64,000 bases of DNA, taken from contig RDEW01000015.1 of the NCBI GenBank assembly GCA_011109175.1, forward strand, positions 770,868 to 834,867, written 5' to 3'. Position 1 is the first letter of the stretch. Each line of letters begins with the position of its first letter. Position numbers and translations under genes: made by a program. Positions 6,171 through 60,604 of the stretch are shown in pieces. Source of the stretch: Dicyema japonicum. Its lineage: Eukaryota > Animalia > Dicyemida. The notes under the pieces were generated by a model. It ran no database searches. It was not told the origin of the DNA and worked only from the letters and a program-made list of their open reading frames with translations.

Positions 6171-6914
6171 ACATCAATGACTATAAGAAATTGTGTACCC
6201 TGATAACGCGGACTTTGTATGAAATAATTGGAAAGCACACGGATTTTCTGAGTTAGCGACAAGTTATCTGAACTATCCATGAAAACTTCAAGGAGAGAGA
6301 TAATCGAGATCAAACGGATGGAGTCACGTAGAAACAACTAAATTAACCAACTGATAAATAAAAAAACGTTATGTTTACCTCTCCCATTGTCTCATTGTGT
6401 GACACTTTTTAAAGCCAATTCTAATCCATAATTCGGACACATGAAGAATCTCAAATTCGAATAGAAGGGGCTCTGGTCCTCCTCACAGAAGACAACTTTG
6501 GTCCCTCCTAGGATTAAATAGTCAATGCAAATAAAAAAATGCTATACGGTTCCGAGGCATCACATTACTCTTCAAGCCAAAAGTAAAGTAGATGAATCAA
6601 ATTATTAACGGAATGGACAGCGGTGAAATTTGAACGAAAGACACTTCTGCCTGGTACATTCGCTTTAAATTTTTTCGGGAAATTGTCAAACGGTCCAAAA
6701 TATGAGGGTGCTTCAACACCTGGGTCTGTAATATGCAGACAATCGATAAATTCTTAAAATAATTCAAAAGCAGATAAATCAATAGTCTTGAAATGGCATT
6801 AAAATATGAATTTGTGCAAAGATCATAGAATCGATAATGGCACCAAAAATTGAGTATTCTATTCTCAAAAATTAAATTCCATTAATTTATTAACTCTGGA
6901 TATACATAGAAGGG

Positions 6915-7200
6915 AATTAATAGTTAGCAACTAATTAAATGTTTTCAATTCTCACAGTCACAGAAGCAGTGAGACCTTCTAATGTCCATCCAGAATCATG
7001 GAAAGGAATAAAACGTCTGATGCTATTAATTTGAAAACATTTAGGGAGAGAAAATAATCCTTTTTTGTGTCATCCTGCCACTGGGGGTCATCCGAGACTG
7101 GTGGATCACATAACGCTACTCTAGTAGAAAGAAAGAAAATAAGGAACAGAGGAAAAGAAAAAAATCTTTCATCCAAGTAGCCAGCGGATGAAATCGAAGC
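6915..7200 (-). mobile_element. Family B short element, diverged copy (B3)
   Basis: Reverse complement aligns with 23300-23630 (TAGAGTAGCGTTATGTGATCCACCAGTCT...CAGTGGCAGG...AAAAAAGGATTA; GACGTTTTATTCC...TGGAC; ACATTTAATTAGTTG). Confidence 0.75.
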
Positions 7201-10100: not shown

Positions 10101-10280
10101 CATTACTGAGAATGAGGCGTTCACGGTGAACCTAGTTGCGCTATGAGCAGTTGGCAGATGTTTTCGTGGGTACGACTTTCCTTGTGTTCACGACTTTCTT
10201 TCTTTTACAGTCTTCAATACATCGTGCAATCACGATAAAGGAAATTAATCAATCAGAATTATGAAATGATTGAGAAACCT

Positions 10281-10530
10281 GGCCTCGTGGCGCCATGTGG
10301 TGCTATGTGGATAGTTGGTCAAAATTTATTTTCCTTTTTTCTGATGGCGTCATTGGATCCATCTTACTGAAGAGACGCTCAATGCCTTGCCGGCATCAAG
10401 AGGATCCAACTATTTTTTCCCCAGAGACAATCTCGTTACCTGGAGATAAATTCTGGAACGCTGGAACGAGTCGGATTAATGAGTTCGTTAGTTTGGTTAC
10501 CCTTAGTCTTTGGAATAATTTTAATATCTT
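10281..10530 (+). mobile_element. Family A short element (A1): GC-rich head, pyrimidine tract, pseudoknot module, AT tail
   Basis: About 245 nt, aligning end to end with the reverse complement of 16281-16524. Both copies end in GTCTTTGGAATAATTTT. Confidence 0.85.
10346..10408 (+). ncRNA. Candidate structured RNA: nested pseudoknot with HDV-ribozyme topology and a non-canonical core
   Basis: P1 GGCGTC(10346-51)/GACGCT(10374-79); P2 TGGATCC(10354-60)/GGATCCA(10402-08); P3 TCTT/AAGA; P4 ATGCC(10382-86)/GGCAT(10392-96). Pairings are kept with compensatory changes in related copies. Confidence 0.55.
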
Positions 10531-10899
10531 TGTTTTTTATAGTTTATTGAGTTTCTTGAACAGGCTACAAGGTTTCGAACATGACCTAGATAGAAAAAAG
10601 AAGTCAGACAGTTATTCAAAACTGTAGCATTTATCCACTTATGTCACTGTAGGGCAAACAACTCTGGATGCTTGTTACAACTAAATTATTGTAATTCTAT
10701 TCTGATGAAGGTGTATTTTAGAATATAATAATTCGAAATAGTCTTGATTATGGCAAAATCTACCTTGTGTCGATCATTCAGATTTTCAAGCAAACAATAT
10801 CCTTCAATAGCACGTCCTTTGTCGACCTTCCCACATCGATATCAGTTTCCCACAAACCTTCCGGTGTGACAAACTCATATTTATGTAGGTAGGGGTTAC

Positions 10900-13450: not shown

Positions 13451-13464
13451 AACCTCATATCCCC

Positions 13465-16200
13465 GCTTTTTTAATTTTTTACCCCAAGATCACCGGATTA
13501 GAAAAGTTAAAAGTTAACTACTAACTAAGTGATCCCGGTTTTCCGGGTTCTGGCTCTCGTTCGGGGTCCTCGAAGATCCAACAGAATTGGTAGAAACGGG
13601 GACGGTCTCATTCTCCATAGATTTCCCGCATTTTCTAGATAGTCAGATATAGAGAGTGAAAGCGGACAGCCGGTTTTCATTGCCCACTGTAGAAATGACT
13701 TCACTCTCCACCTTAGGTGTTCTTTAACATTCAATACGTTATCCACAGTTTTCTTATTTATTATTTTCAAGGCAGCAAGTTGTGCGGCTTCTAATTTTTG
13801 AGACGACGATTCAGAAATCATCGAGCTCCAGGAAGGACATGCGTATTCGATTACTGGCAGTATGTATTGTCTGTAAATTTTCTGTAGTAAGAAGGTGTTG
13901 CGCCCGATTGGTGATCGGGACAAAATTTTCAATATGTTGGTCCTCCTCCTGACCTTGGTAATAACGTCATTGACGTGTTGGCCGAATGTCAAGAGAGTAT
14001 CCAACTTTAATCCTAGTATTGTTGGAGACTTATTCATAGGAATTTCATATCCAAACAATTTGATTTTGGGAGAGTATAATGATCTTCTATATGTAGAGAA
14101 AATTTTTATAAACGACTTTCCTGTAGAAACTTCCAGTCGATTTAATATGAGCCAATGTTCCAACATACTAATATAACTTTGAAGTTTTATGCCTGCCTTC
14201 TCATAGTTAGAGTCTCTCGTCGAAAGAACAATTTCATCTGCGTATAAGAGTATTAATGTATCGGGATCGTCTTTGGTGTACAGGTTGAAGAGCAGGAGAG
14301 AGGTGAACCTTGAGGGACACTATTCGGCAATAAACGGGATTTAGATTTTCTGTTGTCTGACATCACTTGTCCTCTTCTTCCACTTAAAAAGTTCGACAGC
14401 CTTCTTTTAATGTTTGGATTTATAAAAGTGTTAAAAATTTTTTCTATAAGCAGCGTCCGGAAAACGGAGTCGAATGCTTTCTTAATTCTATTGAAGCCAT
14501 TATGGTCCTTTTATGTGGATTTGGATAAGAGAATCCATCAGAAATATATTGAGTTAATTTTGTTAAGTGAGTCGTAGTAGATTGATTTTCACGGAATCCA
14601 TGCTGGAATACTCGATTTGGTACAATATTTTTGATTCGTGTTAAGATTAATTTTTTTTAAATTCGGGACATTGCACATAGTATAGAAATTGGACGATAAG
14701 AAGAGGGATCGTTTGCAGGTTTGTTTGGCTTCCGAATTGGCAGAATTATGGATTTCTTCCATATAGAAGGTATCATATTATTGTTCACAGATATAGTATA
14801 AACGTATGATAGGAATTTGGTTGCTTTTTCACCAAGGTGTTTCAGTTCCATCATCGAGACATTGTCAGCACCTCGGGAACGGGAGTTTTTGGCATCCATG
14901 ATTGCGTTTCGAACTTCTTGTGGAGTAAAGACAATCAAATCATATGATGGATACAACTTCTTCTTGTAGACTCTGTGTTCCCTCGAGAAATTTTTATGGC
15001 TGATTGCGACATAGTGCTTCATTAAAATATTTGGGTCGATGTTGCTACATTCCTGTCCGTGGAGGACTTTCTCAGAGCCTTCATTGCAACGTCTCAAATA
15101 TTTAATTTTCCTCCATATCAGCGTCTCGGATGTATTTGGCGATAGAGAATCAATAAGTGATGTCCATCGCTTTTTGATTCTAGACTTGGTAACTTGTTTA
15201 ATTTGTATATTCAAGAATTTCATTTTTTGGAAATCGTCATTTGATAATTCCTTTTGCTTCTTTAATTTATTTCTTTCTCTGATAAGTGTTTTTGTGTGCA
15301 TATTATAATAGGTATTCCTTGTTTGATGGCATCCCATTGGAATAAATAGTTTTCTTGCTTTGAGTATAATGTCCGTGAAAGTTTTGATCATGTGGTCAAT
15401 TGATGAGAATCCCAATGTGTAAAATACTTCCATATTGGTGTCGATGTAATTAGAGAAATTGGATTAATCTGCGCTTTCAAAATTTAAAAAAGTGGAATTC
15501 TGTCTGATAAATTTATTTTCAGTGTTGATTTTCATCATAATAGGGTTGTGATCACTTCTTAGTTCATATTTTACAGTCCAGTTGATGAGGGGAAACATTG
15601 ATGAGGAACATAAGGAGAGGTCAGGGGATGTAGGTTTGTCTCCTTTTCGAGTAGGTGTTCTTGTGTTGTTTTTGGTGTTATTCAATATACAAAATTGTCC
15701 CAAGTTTCTGGCCAGTAGATTTCCTCTACTCTGTGGTTTCTGGCCTTCATACCATAATTGATGATTGGCATTGATGTCACCGCATAGTATTACGTTTTTG
15801 AGGTTTGAGAAAATCTGTAGGTTAGGGTAGTACCCACTTGGACAGGATGTAGTAGGGGAATATATACATTGACAATATTTATAGTTTTCCTAGGAATTCT
15901 AACATTTATGCCAATTAGTTCCTAGGGGTCATCTTCTCTTGGACTAGAGCAATGTCAACTTCATTAGAGCAATGTCAACTTCATTATGAGTAAGTGGCGG
16001 ACTTCCAGAACCTTGTTTCGTATTCCGTTGATATTGATCTGGACCAGGTTGATTTCAGGGCCTGGGTTGGATTCGACGTCACCACACAAAAAGAGACCTG
16101 GAAAACCATCCTCCTTCATAGATAGGGATACGAAAGTGTAGTTCTTTTCAACATCATGTGATGCACAACACCACCATACAGGTGAACCACGCGGCATTTT
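13465..16200 (-). mobile_element. APE-RT LINE (I/Jockey/Ingi-like) carrying an N-terminal 2A-like peptide; decayed copy
   Basis: GDVESNPGP-EINLVQININGI (APE start); CGDINANHQLW; SDHNPI; RT SRGADNVS..WKKSIILPIRKPNKP..SYRPISIL; DSVFRT; YADE (catalytic D to E); ILGLKLD..F..HV; 3' UTR and A-rich tail near 13470. Confidence 0.9.
16057..16083 (-). other. 2A-like ribosomal skipping (StopGo) motif GDVESNPG|P
   Basis: GGT GAC GTC GAA TCC AAC CCA GGC CCT is an exact D(V/I)ExNPGP consensus directly before the APE domain. Confidence 0.85.
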
Positions 16201-16280
16201 AAATCATATCCCCGCTGTCCAACATAAATGATATCCGTAATATCGTTTATATAAATAATACTGTACTTTACGTAAAAAAA

Positions 16281-16524
16281 TTAAAAATTATTCCAAAGAC
16301 CAAGGGTAACCAAACTTACTAATCCTTGATCCTGACTCGTTCCAGCATTCCAGAACATGTCTCCAGGTAACGATGTTGTCCCCGGAGAAGAAGAATTAGA
16401 TCCTCTTGATGCCGGCCAAGCATTAAGCGTCTTCCTCAGAAGGGTGGATCCGATGACGTCATCGGAAAGAAGGAAAACAATTTATGTCACCTAGCCACAT
16501 AGCACCACATGGCTTCATGCGGCC
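16281..16524 (-). mobile_element. Family A short element (A2) immediately 5' of the 2A-LINE
   Basis: Homologous to 10281-10530. Pseudoknot at 16398-16460 (GACGTC/GACGCT, GGATCC/GGATCT, CCT/AGG, ATGCT/GGCAT). Confidence 0.85.
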
Positions 16525-16999
16525 AAATAAAATTTTTTTACAAAAAGAATAATAATTTGAGAAATAATAATGATAATGAAATGCAGGTAGTTTTAAGATA
16601 CACTATTCATCCAAAAGAGTTGTTGATAAAAAAAATCAATTATATCTCATTTTTGTTACTAACGTTAAACGCTGAAACAGATTATAGCGTTCTGTACACA
16701 AATTAATCAAATCGATCTTAGGAACCTCAGGAATTGAAGATATATAACTCCTCCCTTGGTTTTCATTTATCTTCATTCCCTTCAAGTGAAGGAATAATGT
16801 GGATACTATGACAGTAACTACCAAAAGTAAATGCTACCGACTCCTTTTTCGGTGTCATCAAAAAGTCTTCTCTTGGAGTCTTAAAATTATCATCTAACTA
16901 TAAAAAATGAGTCACTATTCTGTGACAATCTTATGGTCAGTTCCCGTTTCCAAGGTCATTAAGTAAGAGATCTCTGATATATGCAAACGAAGTCCTACT

Positions 17000-19244: not shown

Positions 19245-22200
19245 TATTATTATTTAAGCACTTCACAAGAGCCATACTAATTATAGCCCCGCATGTGCAG
19301 CAAAAGAAACAAGGTTAGATGTCATCCTTTTCCATGCTCCTCTGTTCCTAGCCAAGGCTCTCATGCTGTCCAGGTCGTCGGCATTTGTTAGATTTTTTTA
19401 TACTGACCAGGTCTTTTTGTAAGACTATTGGCAGTGTTGTTCTTGGTCTTCCCGATAGCGGCCTTCTTGACTAACATAGTATGTTTCCATAGATATGTTC
19501 GGTGGGGAAGTTAATTCCATCCTCAGCACGTGTCCGAAGAGCCTCCATCGGGATTCCAGTACTTCTAAGCTGATAGGTCTAGTGCTGCATCTCTTATATA
19601 AAGCATTCCTAGATATTCTCGTAGGCCAAGTAGTTCCTGTTATTTTTCTCAGCTGACCTCTGTGGAACGAGTCTAGTTTTTTCATATCCGCTGATGAGGT
19701 CGCCCAAGTTCCAGCGTTATATAAAAGTACGGGTTTTATGAATGAGTCGTATAGTAGGATTCTCATTTTCGTGTCGATGCCTTTTTGATTGAGCCATAAA
19801 TTCTTCAGTTTATATAACGCAGCATTGGCTAGAGTTTTCCTACGTAAAATATCTTCGCTATCTCCCATAAGTGAACCGAGTTTCTTTACTTGTCGCCACT
19901 TCTCTTCTAGGACGTTACTCATCCTTCTTATCTCTGTGAGTTCTGTTTTTTCTCTGTTCACAGTAAGAAACCATTTCCCTAGTACATCTGGTGCTTTTTC
20001 TAATAGGTTTTCCAGGACCTCTTTGTCTTCAGAAATTAGGTCTACATCGTCCGCGTAGATTACTTCTTCCGTCTTTCCTTGGTATGACGGTCTAAGTTCC
20101 CTCATAGCGGCTTCCAAATAAATTGTGAATAGTAGAGGAGAAAGAGAGTCTCCTTGTGGAGTGCCCGTATTTGTTTCAAATTTTCTTGAATAGGTTTTTC
20201 CGACTCTCACAAGGAGCTCAGTGTTAGAAAGTAGAATTCGGATCATCCTTAGACTCGATTCATCAAGAAATCCGCCCAGTACCCCCATTAATTTGTTCCT
20301 GTTAACCGTATCAAAAGCTCTTGATAGATCAATTCCCAAAATATTGGTGGCGTTACGGTATCTTTGATATGTTGCACACCTCCATCTGTGACTCCAGACC
20401 GCATCAGCTGTGGATCTCCCTTCTCGAAAACCACTTTGACTATCTGGTAGGTATTTGTAAGCAGGTCCTTTTATTCGTTCAAGCACAATGTTTGCCAAGA
20501 CTTTGCGTAATGAATTTAGTAGTATGATGGGTCGCAAATTTTCGAGCGGTCCTCTGTTTTTGTTAGTTTTTTGTATGGGGATTAGTAGTCCCGTACCCAG
20601 AGGTAGAGTTGAGTTAGTTGAAAACATTTCATTTAGTAGTGTAGCGATTTTTTCAAAAAGGAGGTCAGGGCCGTATTTCAGTAGTTCTGGGTTTATCGCA
20701 TCTGGTCCGGGGCTTCTGTTATTCTTGAGTTTTCGGCAGGCCGTTTTGATTTCCTCGGCCGTGATTGGTATCTTAAGGGGTCTTGGCCTTCCATCAAATG
20801 GGTGGATTTCTATGGTTTTGATGTTGAAAAGCTTCTCAAAGTGAGCCGCGATGGCTTCAGTTTGTTCTTTGGTGTTCAGTATCAGCTTACCGTTCTCGTC
20901 TTTTATGGTTAGTCGACTTCGGTTTGTTCGCCGCAGCAAACGGCACACTTTGTTTACTTCTTCTATACAGGAGGCTATTTCTTCTATGAAAAGCTTCTTG
21001 TTCAGACCCTTTATTTTTCTTCTGACACGTTGTCTTTCGCCTTGAAGGGCTTTTATCGCATTAGTGTCAGTGGCATTTGATTTTCTCATATTTATTTCTT
21101 TTAGACTTTTCGCAAGCTCAGGAACATCTGGATGAATAGCCTTCAGGTGCATTTTACTATTCTCCCTTTTGCCAAGACATGCTTCAGCAGCTTCGTTGAT
21201 GGTGTCCTTTGTGCGTTTCCAGGCGTCTTCTAGCGTGGTATCCACCAATACGTCCTGCAAATTAGTCTGAATGTATTGTTGATATCTCTCAGTAGTCTCC
21301 GGTTGAGAAATCAGCCTTTCAGTCGCGTAGTCGCCTCTGATTTTCTCAAATTCGTGATTTTTTGCATTCCTGTATTTATGGCATGTTTTTTCAGGGTGAA
21401 GGTCGCAATAACCATCTTGTGGTCGCTGACAGTCGTCGAGCCTTCATATGAACGTGCGTTTACTAGAAGGTGTTTGTCTTTAGCCCGGCATATGACATAA
21501 TCGATTTGGTTGTATATTGGGACCAGCTTTCCTTCTGAGTTCCTTCGCTTCCCCATCCACGTAGTTTTGTGGCAGGCAGGATGCGTAAATGCAGTATTGC
21601 ATAGGAAAAGGTTGTTTGCCATACAAAAGTGACCAAGTATTGTCCCGGGTAAATTTCTTATTCCACGTCCATGTTCTCCCAAGAAAACATCATCCGGGTT
21701 ATTCTTCATCCCGACTTTTGCATTCAAATCACCAGCAATGAGTATTAGTGATGACGACTCATATTCGTTGTACGTCCGTAACAGTGTTGAATAGAAGTCG
21801 TCTAGTTCTGTCGGATCTTTCGCTACTCTCCCGCAGTGTGGCGCATAAACATTTACAATTGTCAGAAAGCTCTTCGAAGGAGGTAAGTCGTTTAGCCGGA
21901 TTTGTATAACACAGATCCTGTCATTCACACTCCATATACGGTGGACTGCACTTGTCAACTTTGAGTGGATGGCAAATCCAAGTCCATAATGTTTTGAGTC
22001 GCTCGGCTGACATATAATTCGATATTCGCCAAAGTTTTCATCAAGGCTACAAGTAACTTTCGTCTCTTGTAGACACCCAATAGATACGTCGTATCTCTCC
22101 AGGTCATCACAGAGAATCTTCCTCGACCAGGTCGTAGATAAGCCTCTAGCATTGAACGTAAGGACTTTTAGACGAGATGCATCCCTTTGTATCCATTGCC

Positions 22201-22262
22201 TTTTAGACATTTTTCTCAATTGCGATCCAATCAAGAAACGAGGCACGTCACCACCTCACCAA
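19245..22262 (-). mobile_element. Near full-length RTE retrotransposon (APE plus RT), (TAA)n tail
   Basis: ORFs 21311-22246 (TFNARGL, CLQETK, AGDLNAKVG, SDH) and 19425-21260 (SPGPD, QSGFREGRST, DLSRAFD, PQGDSLSP, YADD). Two frameshifts. TTATTATTATT at 19241-19255. Confidence 0.95.
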
Positions 22263-22599: not shown

Positions 22600-23295
22600 A
22601 TTGAATATATGCCCTCGGAATTATATCCACATCCAAAACATCCATATATGACTTGTAGAACTTACAATTCCTTCCCAAGTCAAAACAATAGGAATAATTT
22701 TAACTTTCGCGATGTATATTTGAGACAACTCTCCAGCGACGAGGTCATATTTGTGAAGTTTTTCTACCTCAACCGCCTTCAGCATCTCCTGAGAAGTGAT
22801 CCCAACCTCCATCAAAGTAATCTCACTTGTCTTTTTATCAAAAACAAATATGTCCGACTTGTTATGCTGTATTTTGACATCAGTCATTAGCGTCGTATCG
22901 ACACGAATCTCGACATTCTCAGTTGTTACTATTGATTGGACTGAGTGAGTCTTCAGTTTCTTTGAATATGTGATTCCATATTTACGACACAGGTTTAAAT
23001 GAAGACATCTCACCACTTCATTGTGACGTCGTATGTAATCACTATTTAATATCCTATTGCATCTCGTTGCCAAATGATCGACTGTTTTTTGGCAGATTTA
23101 CAATGATTGCAATTGGATCCTTTTTCTTCAAAAAACAAATTTCGGTCTTGTAAAAGGCAATGCAAAGCTTCGGCTCTTAGACTATTATTCCCTCTTGCAA
23201 GCCACCCCGAAGATGATGCAATGTCAGCTTTTAAACATTTGAATAGCAAAGAATTGAGAGATATACTGTTAATTTTCATCAATAACCATTCAATT
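22600..23295 (-). mobile_element. R4-like element, 3' part (CCHC plus REL)
   Basis: LLQDRNLFF..CNHCKSAKK..HLATRC..YIRRHNEVVRCLHL..IEVGITS..VEVEKLHKYD. Confidence 0.85.
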
Positions 23296-23299
23296 TGAA

Positions 23300-23630
23300 C
23301 TTGTTATTATTATTAATTAACCCCTAATACACCGAGAAAGAAGTAAAAGTAAACAACTAATTAAGTGTATCCAGTTTCCACTTATACAGAAACAGAGTCC
23401 ATTTGGAATCAGCATAAAAGGTAAGACGTCCATTACATGCAGTTGTGGAAACCCCTCCAGTGGAGTGGGGAAGAGCAAATGATCCTTTTTCGTGCCGGCC
23501 TGGCACTGGGCGTCACCTAGACAGGTGGATCACATGACGCCACTCTATTAGGAGAAGAGAGGAGGAACAGACAAGCAAGCAGAAAACTTGAACCAATTAC
23601 CCACGCAGCACCACATGGCGCCACGTGGCG
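23300..23630 (-). mobile_element. Family B short element (B1) with pseudoknot module and LINE-type 3' tail
   Basis: Near-identical to 27415-27732. Pseudoknot at 23480-23541. The 3' 65 nt resemble 13480-13545. (TAA)n tail. Confidence 0.9.
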
Positions 23631-24852
23631 TGAGAAATATTAATGAACTTGTTAAATTCAATTTTAACGAACTAAATATATAAATTTGTTATTAATTTAA
23701 TAAAATTCTAAATAATTAAATTTACTCTTGGGGGTGGAAATTTTTGGATGTGCGGTGATATTTCAAAATGGGCGCCGGGAAAAAGGGTTTAGAATCACTG
23801 GATTAGGGCATTGAATCTCAAAATTGCAAAATAACTTAAGAAAGAAAAGATGTAGTAGAAATTATATTCTACAAACAAATATTATCTTAACGTTATCCAG
23901 ATTTTCTTTTGAATCTGACCCTTCGAGATCATTGGAAAAGATCACCGGAAGTATATTTTGCTTTCATCCATAAACTTAATCATAATTTATGGCCAATTTA
24001 GCAGATTTTTAAATCATGTAATTGATCGGATATTTTTAACTGCAATCCATATAGTACATGTATTAAATAAAAAACTACATTTATTAAATAACAAAACATT
24101 CATGAATTAAGAACAATAATTCTCATGTTAACGCTCAATCAGATCCTGCTTGCTCAGGTACCTTCTATTTGGGGCAGACGAGATTAGAACCAAGATATTG
24201 ATGAATCTAATTTTTCCTTTCTGATACTCGTCATATTCGATGTCTTCTGAGTCCATTAAGAAGGGACGAGAAGAAATGAAAATATTAGTGTATTACAGCT
24301 ACGCTATAGTGCACCAGGGCTACGTAACTAGCTCAATTTTCTGACCAATTGACCGCTAGGGTAACTGGTCAACTACATTTTTATTAGCAAAATACATAGA
24401 ATCCTACGTGGAGCTTCTGACGGATAATCCTCCAAGTTCATTCAATTTTGGGCCAGCTGGATTTGGACATAGATCCTACGTGAATCCGACACTTTTTTCT
24501 CCGAATATCAAGTTTTTGATGACTCTCGAGTCCGTCCTATCGCAGTTCACGAGAATAAGCAAAACGAGGGCTTCCATCAATCATGAAGCAAAGTAGACAT
24601 TTAGCACAATAGAGGTATTTCGGGTGATTAAAATTCAAAGCCTCACTGTAAATCAAAAAAAGTCAATGCACTTAATATTTTACGGAATTTATTTTGTTAA
24701 TTTTAAGGTTAACAATGGAATGCCCTTTAGGAAAAACAATTCAGGCATGTAATCAATAGTCACGTTTTATTGATTTGTATATCACCTTATTTTTAAAATT
24801 CAATAATAATGAATTTCTATTTTACTATTAGTAAAAACTGTTAGATTTCTAA

Positions 24853-27334: not shown

Positions 27335-27830
27335 AACCTTCCCGTTGTGGAGATTTATCCAGGACTCTAAAACTCATTGCAGGAAAAGGACGGGTATGGA
27401 CACAATTTTTTTTAATTTATTAACCCGGATACACCGAGAAAGAAGTTAAAGTAAACAACTAATTAAGTGTATCCAGTTTCCACTTGTACAGAAACAGAGT
27501 ACATCCGGAATCAACATAAAAGGTAAGACGTCCATTACCTGCAATTGTGGAAACCCCTCCAGTGGAGTGGGGAAAAGCAAATGATCCTTTTTCGTGCCGG
27601 CTTGGCACTGGGCGTCACCTAGACAGGTGGATCACATGACACCACTCTAATAGGAAGAGAGAGGAGGAACAGACAAGCAAGCAGAAAACTTCAATCAATT
27701 AACCACGCAGCACCACATGGCGCCACGCGGCCAATTTAAAATTTAAACAGAAATCATTTAATTAGTCGATAATTTTTTTCCTCTTTTTCGTGATTCCAGA
27801 GTTAATAAAATTAAATTAAAATTAATTAGT
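27335..27830 (+). mobile_element. LINE 3' end fragment split by the B2 insertion
   Basis: 27335-27405 and 27745-27830 match consecutive parts of 59960-60100. Confidence 0.65.
27415..27732 (-). mobile_element. Family B short element (B2)
   Basis: Near-identical to B1. Pseudoknot at 27582-27643, with GGTGTCA/TGACGCC keeping P1 through a G-U wobble. Confidence 0.9.
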
Positions 27831-60100: not shown

Positions 60101-60604
60101 TGAATAAAATACAGGTTTCAAGATGTCACTGACCTCCTAACGCTCTAGTTAGTGCTGTATCTCGTATCGCGTCTGTTAAAACCGATACCTACTTGGTCGA
60201 AGGATTCCTTTCTGTTTTTTCTCTTCTTCAATTCATACGAGACGTTGTGGATTCCATCAAAGAAGAAGGATAGAATCCCACAACTGGTCTAACCTAAATT
60301 CGTTAGCACGTGGTGATGTATTAGATTTTGTAGTGCTTTACATTATAATGAGCTCAATTTTTCAATAGATTTTGGGTTACCGATAAGAGATATAATATTC
60401 TTTGTTAATAACCCACTTTCCCTCATACAGAACCTGTTAAAACTCATGGAAATTATCCAAGAGTCCTTAGAGTGTGAATCCAGATAACTATTATGGTTAT
60501 CAAAGAGCCATTGAACCTAAAAAGTGTAACAAGAAAAAAAAGTTTAAGTTTTACGATAATAATTTCCCCTTTGGAGAGGAATAGTATTATTTCAATGAAT
60601 AAAC

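Follow-up and report, generated by a model that had tools for sequence, protein, structure and literature searches.

An HDV-like nested pseudoknot with a truncated core inside two families of short retroposon-like elements of Dicyema japonicum

Short elements and LINEs of the window

The window, by which the whole analysed stretch of 64,000 nucleotides is meant, consists of AT-rich (36% G+C), repeat-rich eukaryotic DNA in which several APE/RT LINE fragments are present. Self-BLAST of the window placed the copies of a nested pseudoknot motif within two short repeat families, A and B, of 252 bp and 326 bp respectively, both of which are SINE-like.

10280-10531, + strand: family A copy A1 (81.6% identity to 16525-16274 by self-BLAST), laid out as a leader, then the pseudoknot, then a 3' part
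16274-16525, - strand: family A copy A2, outside the TSD-bounded LINE insertion
23304-23629, - strand: family B copy B1, 326 bp
23644-23653 and 23296-23305: 10-bp exact TSD of B1 (AACAAGTTCA), flanking the element
about 23304-23380, - strand: LINE-derived 3' tail of B1; an A-rich stretch follows the family B tail
27407-27731, - strand: family B copy B2, 92% identical to B1
6882-7150, - strand: degraded family B copy B3, from self-BLAST and covariance model
1832-1937, + strand: sixth, decayed copy, with the leader block and the motif carrying internal deletions
13468-16203, - strand: 2A-type LINE with 2A peptide GDVESNPGP, APE and RT, frameshifted
16204-16216 and 13455-13467: 13-bp TSD of the 2A-LINE (AGCGGGGATATGA), bounding the element

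Family B shows the features of SINEs and SIDEs, being short and non-coding (stop codons lie in all frames over the motif), flanked by a TSD and terminated by the 3' end of a partner LINE, since its 3' tail of about 75 nt is homologous to the 3' end of the 2A-LINE (score 27-33 vs 9±1.6 for shuffles). For family A, a partner-LINE tail was not identified and a clear TSD was not found. None of the short elements carries a head known to Rfam, and a tRNA-derived SINE head was rejected, as ARAGORN finds nothing and internal T-runs speak against Pol III. Judged by these features the elements are SINE/SIDE-like, family B being dependent on the 2A-LINE lineage.

The 2A-LINE copy at 13468-16203, the ATG of which lies 7 nt from the 5' junction, has no pseudoknot. 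Reading A2 and this LINE as a single pseudoknot-headed LINE (13465-16524) was considered and discarded: the 13-bp TSD ends the LINE at 16203 and A2 is therefore a separate insertion. A resemblance of the leader, at peptide and DNA level, to the 5' end of the 2A-LINE (GCCGCGTGG...) was seen and is not significant. Since no LINE in the window carries the motif, its link to LINE 5' ends is drawn from the public relatives described below.

Two side observations concern the siting of these insertions. A2 and B1 each precede, by 60-230 bp, a LINE body that is oriented as they are (16274-16203 and 23304-23073, both on the - strand), namely the 2A-LINE for A2 and the APE/RT LINE at 19425-22246 for B1; the TSDs show separate insertions, so that the siting may be fortuitous or may reflect a preference in insertion. 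An ORF of 150 aa with no Pfam match (22621-23073, - strand), which shows, by eye, a nuclease-like pattern of conserved H/D/E/K residues, lies shortly before the APE ORF of the second of these LINEs.

Fold of the pseudoknot and covariation between the families

The five motif copies described in the sequence-only reading of this DNA were verified at their coordinates and on their strands, and the strand order it had proposed (P1-P2-P3-P1'-P4-P2') was borne out, as all intact copies thread into it. The motif is 62-63 nt long.

10346-10408, + strand: pseudoknot of A1, HDV topology
10346-10351/10374-10379: P1 of A1
10354-10360/10402-10408: P2 of A1
10363-10365/10370-10372: P3 of A1
10366-10369: L3 of A1 (ACUG)
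10380-10381: J1/4 of A1 (CA)
10382-10386/10392-10396: P4 of A1
10397-10401: J4/2 of A1 (CAAGA)
16398-16460, - strand: pseudoknot of A2, P1 pair 2 being an A.C mismatch and both P2 and P4 containing G.U wobbles
23479-23541, - strand: pseudoknot of B1, HDV topology
23541-23535/23515-23509: P1 of B1
23533-23527/23485-23479: P2 of B1
23525-23523/23518-23516: P3 of B1
23522-23519: L3 of B1 (GUCU), with J1/4 CA
23506-23502/23496-23492: P4 of B1
23491-23486: J4/2 of B1 (GAAAAA, without C)
27581-27643, - strand: pseudoknot of B2, P1 pair 3 being U.G
7055-7117, - strand: pseudoknot remnant of B3, P1 having two mismatches and P4 a single one
1875-1937, + strand: motif of the sixth copy, with J4/2 CAAGA as in family A

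Every helix quoted in the sequence-only reading is present: P1 as GGCGTC/GACGCT (A1), GGCGTCA/TGACGCC (B1) and GGTGTCA/TGACGCC (B2), P2 as TGGATCC/GGATCCA vs (G)TGATCC/GGATCA(T), P4 as ATGCC/GGCAT vs GTGCC/GGCAC, and a P3 hairpin of 3-4 bp with a 4-nt loop. In the intact copies P1 measures 6-7 bp, P2 7 bp, P3 3 bp with a loop of 4 nt and P4 5 bp with a loop of 5 nt. G1 closes P1 as a G.U pair in A1 and as G-C in B1 and B2; A2 and B3 carry P1 mismatches.

A covariance model made from the five copies recovers all five at 76-95 bits and adds the sixth copy at 1875-1937 on the + strand (16.8 bits, E 0.018). The four-helix topology, defined by at least 6 bp in P1, at least 6 bp in P2, 3 bp in P3 and 5 bp in P4, appeared in 0/200,000 shuffles of A1 and 1/200,000 of B1. 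A relaxed descriptor scan over both strands of the window gave 217 matches headed by A1, B1 and B2, which are its sole compact G+C-rich matches (21-22 bp with 12-14 G-C pairs in 62-63 nt). Folding limited to nested pairs displays P1 with P4 or P2 with P4, which is expected of a pseudoknot and is uninformative alone. A chance origin of the fold is excluded. A scan of metagenome and viral contigs with the pattern GGYGTCATNNGATCCAYC returned chance matches only, none of them with P4 or P2'.

For the analysis of covariation, A1 and B1 were aligned by hand on their structures (22 pairs) and significance was obtained by simulation, because realignment of P2' with the covariance model repeated a MAFFT misregister. 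Between the two copies, 10/44 paired positions are changed (23%) vs 6/12 unpaired ones (50%). Eight of the ten paired changes make up four doubly changed pairs, all four of which still pair (family A/family B: P2-1 U-A/G.U, P2-2 G-C/U-A, P3-2 U-A/C-G and P4-1 A-U/G-C), and the remaining two improve P1, the intact pairs numbering 21/22 in A1 and 22/22 in B1. Ten substitutions placed at random reach the observed compensation with a simulated p of about 1e-5 to 6e-4, a value to be read with two independent lineages (A and B) in the window and with the P3 and outer P2 pairs depending on register. In all, three to four double compensatory changes distinguish family A from family B, and every helix is preserved.

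The covariation put forward helix by helix in the sequence-only reading stood to different degrees. For P4 it holds, the closing pair passing from A-U in family A to G-C in family B. The change reported for P2 does keep its pairs across the families, with no indel however: the helix has 7 bp in both and two of its pairs covary. For P3 (CTT/AAG vs CCT/AGG) the pairing is present, and its covariation depends on the choice of alignment because A2 can form CCU/AGG too. The general statement that pairing survives sequence change applies between A and B; A2 and B3 have mismatches in P1. The motifs of A1 and A2 are about 82% identical, a value that also applies to the entire element, and the four changes between them at paired positions comprise two that disrupt a pair and two C-to-U wobbles. 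Differences within families thus appear to be mostly neutral decay, the real covariation signal lying, on these alignments, between A and B.

Taken together, these comparisons indicate that helices P1-P4 are real and were kept by compensatory substitutions during the divergence of A and B. Recent common descent could account in part for their conservation.

Canonical relatives, truncated core and retained leader

The ORF of the 2A-LINE at 14657-15433 (- strand) was used as query against 1.84 billion representative proteins, giving 7,955 relatives at E<=0.001, and an N-terminal 2A peptide was recognised in 18 of the best 150. A structural descriptor was then run over the region of the ORF start in the DNA of seven 2A relatives. 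In 5/7 contigs, taken from Logan, ENA/TARA and a single NCBI assembly, an HDV-type fold was found that either directly precedes the start of the pre-2A ORF or overlaps with it.

L171:90-169: L3 UGCACGA, J1/4 GC, J4/2 CAAAU
L172:351-416: L3 UGCACGU, J1/4 GC, J4/2 CAAAU
L177:163-228: L3 UCUUCGC, J1/4 AC, J4/2 CCAAAU
L175:103-205: L3 UCUUUGC, J1/4 AC, J4/2 CCAAAC
L173:39-125: long L3, J1/4 AC, J4/2 CCAAA

Two core subtypes are distinguished, L3 UGCACGN with J1/4 GC and L3 UCUUYGC with J1/4 AC, and a compact canonical core, in which a 7-nt L3 follows the pattern U..(.)CG. and J4/2 is of the CAAA type and led by C, occurs in four of the five loci. The L3 of HDV itself, UCCUCGC, fits this 7-nt pattern. 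The helices are wholly different among the loci while the cores agree, which is the signature of genuine HDV-like ribozymes. Since the descriptor background elsewhere in these contigs is about 1 per 6 kb, finding 5/7 no more than a few hundred bases from the 2A start far exceeds background. Rfam detects none of the relatives' HDV-like ribozymes; its HDV-family models also gave no match at E<=10 over the whole window and 111-nt slices, and this silence carries no weight as the canonical-looking relatives are missed too. Two related contigs, L001 and L002, lack a 2A peptide, and their DNA resembles neither the short elements nor the 2A-LINE.

The relatives' ribozymes have in common with the window motif the host type (a 2A-APE-RT LINE), the helix order and the sizes, with P1 of 6-7 bp, P2 of 6-7, P3 of 3 and P4 of 4-5 in the compact ones, as well as the joiners, J1/2 of 1-3 nt, J1/4 of 2 nt and J4/2 of 5-6 nt and CAA type. 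On the other hand, in the relatives L3 has 7 nt, P1.1 occupies the canonical register and J4/2 starts with C, whereas the window motifs have a 4-nt L3, share no P1.1 register and, in family B, carry G at the C position.

The non-canonical core noted in the sequence-only reading was confirmed in that L3 is 4 nt throughout (ACUG, UGAG or GUCU) with no consistent P1.1. J1/4 is CA or UA, and the possible pairings of L3 with J1/4 (UG/CA or CU/AG) fall in different registers in A1, A2 and B; the HDV arrangement, an L3 of about 7 nt with conserved U...CG and a 2-bp P1.1 formed with J1/4, is thus absent from the window motifs. We know of no active HDV-family member with an L3 as short as 4 nt. J4/2 reads CAAGA in A1, A2 and the sixth copy, GAAAAA in B1 and B2 and AAAAAA in B3, so the catalytic-C position, i.e. 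the first of J4/2, holds C in the first group, G in B1/B2 and A in B3. The 'CGAAAAA' given earlier for family B was an error, the C counted there being the closing base of P4. It has been reported that the catalytic C is the first nucleotide of J4/2 and that its loss is rescued by no substitution (PMC10879173). In the P1.1 of fast HDV-family ribozymes, U:A is combined with C:U or U:U (PMC13635239); a weak P1.1 is therefore tolerated and the earlier use of a 'GG' linker (J1/4) as an HDV criterion was too strict.

As judged from the aligned copies, the catalytic core appears not to have been kept, L3 having gone from 7 to 4 nt with no common P1.1 and with G for the catalytic C in family B. Family A retains G1.U, a C-led CAAGA (relatives CAAAU) and a possible UG/CA P1.1, remnants that make weak or unconventional cleavage possible there.

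The other observation bearing on cleavage is the sequence upstream of G1, the would-be cut site. Retention of this leader, claimed in the sequence-only reading, was upheld: it is conserved and present in all six copies, with 66 nt in family A and 88 nt in family B, and the TSD of B1 lies outside it, 14 nt upstream. A retrotransposon 5'-processing ribozyme of the R2, L1Tc or RTE type has its cut site at or upstream of the inherited 5' end, and here the leader precedes G1. As the retroposed unit always includes the leader, the template RNA was presumably not cut at G1. In addition, the 92% identity of B1 and B2 suggests that the family without the catalytic C, the younger of the two, was the most recently mobile.

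10283-10310, + strand: 5'-terminal leader hairpin of A1, stem of 9+2 bp and AUGU loop
23601-23628, 27702-27731 and 16493-16524, - strand: leader hairpins elsewhere, in both families

The first 30 nt or so of the leader form a hairpin of 9-13 bp with an AUGU loop containing AUG (z -3.4 to -4.7); the A1 hairpin has a folding z of -3.5, equal stability being reached in 0/200 shuffles. Several G.U pairs in the stem point to an RNA structure of the sense strand.

Further observations were made on the leader. One stem position is G-C in B, G.U in A1 and A-U in A2, and as DNA the hairpin consists of two E-box-like hexamers, CACGTG-GCGC-CATGTG. The B1 leader segment GGCGCCATGTGGTGC (23615-23601) matches the P1-J1/2-P2 5' strands GGCGTCATGTGATCC (23541-23527) at 12/15 positions, both on the - strand, which could represent a relic of partial 5' duplication or an alternative P1 strand. 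At 60190-60290 on the + strand, a related leader block (TACTTGGTCGAAGGATTCC...), common to 1832-1875, is followed by a long imperfect hairpin (GTTGTGGATTC...GAATCCCACAAC) with no pseudoknot. In A1, an open frame of about 117 codons (10274-10624, + strand) runs from the element 5' end through the pseudoknot and beyond the 3' end, with the leader AUG 8 codons into it; A2 keeps this frame over the motif despite two offsetting indels, which is not significant given the divergence. Three candidate features were rejected: an attenuator pairing of the leader with P2', taken from minimum-free-energy folds, is no better than in shuffles (p 0.09-0.69), a degenerate 2A relic in family A (LPGD.FWNAGT) is not significant, and a -1 frameshift signal has no in-frame slippery heptamer upstream, A2 and B having none at all.

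Origin of the motif and comparison with known systems

The sequence-only reading had offered a choice between a new HDV-related ribozyme variant and a non-catalytic pseudoknot. HDV descent is supported by the relatives, and the evidence on activity (short L3, P1.1, the G of family B and the leader) leans towards the non-catalytic option. On balance, then, the motif is probably a degenerate descendant of a LINE ribozyme that selection has kept as a non-cleaving cis module. Its ancestor would be an HDV-like self-cleaving ribozyme heading 2A-type LINEs, captured by two short LINE-dependent retroposon families behind a hairpin-led leader of 66-88 nt. The transposition template would here be uncleaved and the fold would be maintained in master copies for a cleavage-independent cis role, the most plausible candidates being recognition of the RNA's 5' region by the LINE protein, help with internal translation in the parent LINEs, and stabilisation of the RNA. 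Once cutting was lost, a 5' leader, perhaps serving as an internal promoter, could have become heritable. With the helices compensated in two lineages that already had a short L3, retention of the fold for a non-cleaving cis function would be the simplest reading.

The motif might instead be still self-cleaving, as a minimal-L3 HDV variant that cleaves partially, uncleaved RNAs serving as templates and cleaved RNAs serving another purpose. The full HDV helix order and sizes preserved by compensation are in its favor, as are the G1.U of family A, its C-led J4/2 in a CAA context like that of the canonical relatives, and the ability of UG in the A1 L3 to pair with J1/4 CA, P1.1 not needing to be G-C (PMC13635239). 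However, L3 has 4 nt vs the 7 nt with conserved U...CG of the four compact relatives and HDV, the only possible P1.1 is register-shifted among A1, A2 and B, and family B has G, not C, after the covarying P4 closing pair. Moreover, P1 mismatches like that of A2 abolish cleavage by the R2 ribozyme (PMC3774820), and the leader is retained in every copy. Such residual or novel cleavage, mainly in family A, is considered unlikely.

It is equally doubtful that the motif is a functionless, decaying relic of a LINE ribozyme, with an apparent compensation produced by few lineages and a hand alignment. Three to four double compensations with 0/22 pairs disrupted, acquired after L3 was short (p <= 6e-4), and helices that changed less than loops stand against such neutral decay, although the changes within families do look neutral (A1/A2 about 82%, 2 disruptive and 2 wobble), B3 and the sixth copy are decayed, and trypanosomatid SIDER elements keep well-folded, inactive HDV-like motifs, some copies folding adequately with no cleavage (PMC4035085).

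A new catalytic solution within the HDV fold, working with a 4-nt L3, without canonical P1.1 and in family B without the J4/2 C, and making a regulated cut at G1 that leaves full-length templates, is regarded as quite improbable. Least tenable is the absence of any RNA structure, the motif being DNA palindromes, transcription-factor sites (CRE-like TGACGTCA in A2, GGATCC, GCCGGC) or chance, for although half-CRE sites occur in P1 and a number of arms are hexameric palindromes, the interleaved arms with G.U pairs work on the sense strand only, the compensatory changes preserve pairing and not sequence, shuffling essentially never yields the topology, and the canonical ribozymes of the relatives share position and architecture.

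The known function of HDV-like ribozymes at LINE 5' ends is to cut the element out of a longer transcript. In the short elements the scaffold appears to have been maintained after loss of the catalytic loop and a move inside the inherited unit and, if this is true, the fold has a second, cleavage-independent role. For R2 and further elements, roles in protein recognition and in translation have been suggested, which are difficult to tell apart from cutting. A naturally occurring version that does not cut, beside canonical relatives, would be a clean system for such a cleavage-independent role, and it would illustrate how lost self-cleavage could let an element gain a heritable 5' leader or promoter.

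Among known systems, an HDV-like fold common to a 2A-bearing APE-type LINE and its short derivatives is also found in L1TcRz/Pr77 of Trypanosoma cruzi L1Tc, NARTc and SIDER (PMC3185411, PMC3383444, PMC4035085). The L1Tc ribozyme occupies nt 1-77, cuts at +1 and overlaps the internal promoter (PMC3185411, PMC3383444, PMC4035085), whereas in the window a separate hairpin leader of 66-88 nt precedes the fold within the element and the L3/P1.1 core is shortened. The SIDEs of R2 are likewise short and internally deleted and keep a 5' HDV-like fold together with the 3' end required by the RT (PMC3774820, PMC3414825). R2 and its SIDEs must be cleaved from an rRNA co-transcript, and conservation is high in their 15-nt P1.1/P3/L3 core (PMC3774820, PMC3414825); in the window, by contrast, this core has been lost and sequence upstream is passed on with the element. 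In the R2 model, the element's 5' end is extended via shifts or loss of the P1 cleavage site, and the passage from loss of cleavage to a heritable leader accords with it (PMC3774820). The HDV, CPEB3, C. briggsae and minimal theta ribozymes form a nested pseudoknot like the window motif, and their P1.1 may be weak (PMC13635239, PMC10879173). All active members retain the catalytic C as first nucleotide of J4/2, which family B lacks, and their L3, unlike that of the window motif, is long enough for P1.1 and the return strand; minimal variants of the family lose P4, not L3 (PMC13635239, PMC10879173). Full-text searches of the literature gave no paper that connects HDV-like ribozymes with octopus or dicyemids. 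With respect to all these systems, the motif stands apart by lying inside the element after a hairpin leader, by its shortened L3/P1.1 core and by the maintenance of its helices through compensation after that loss.
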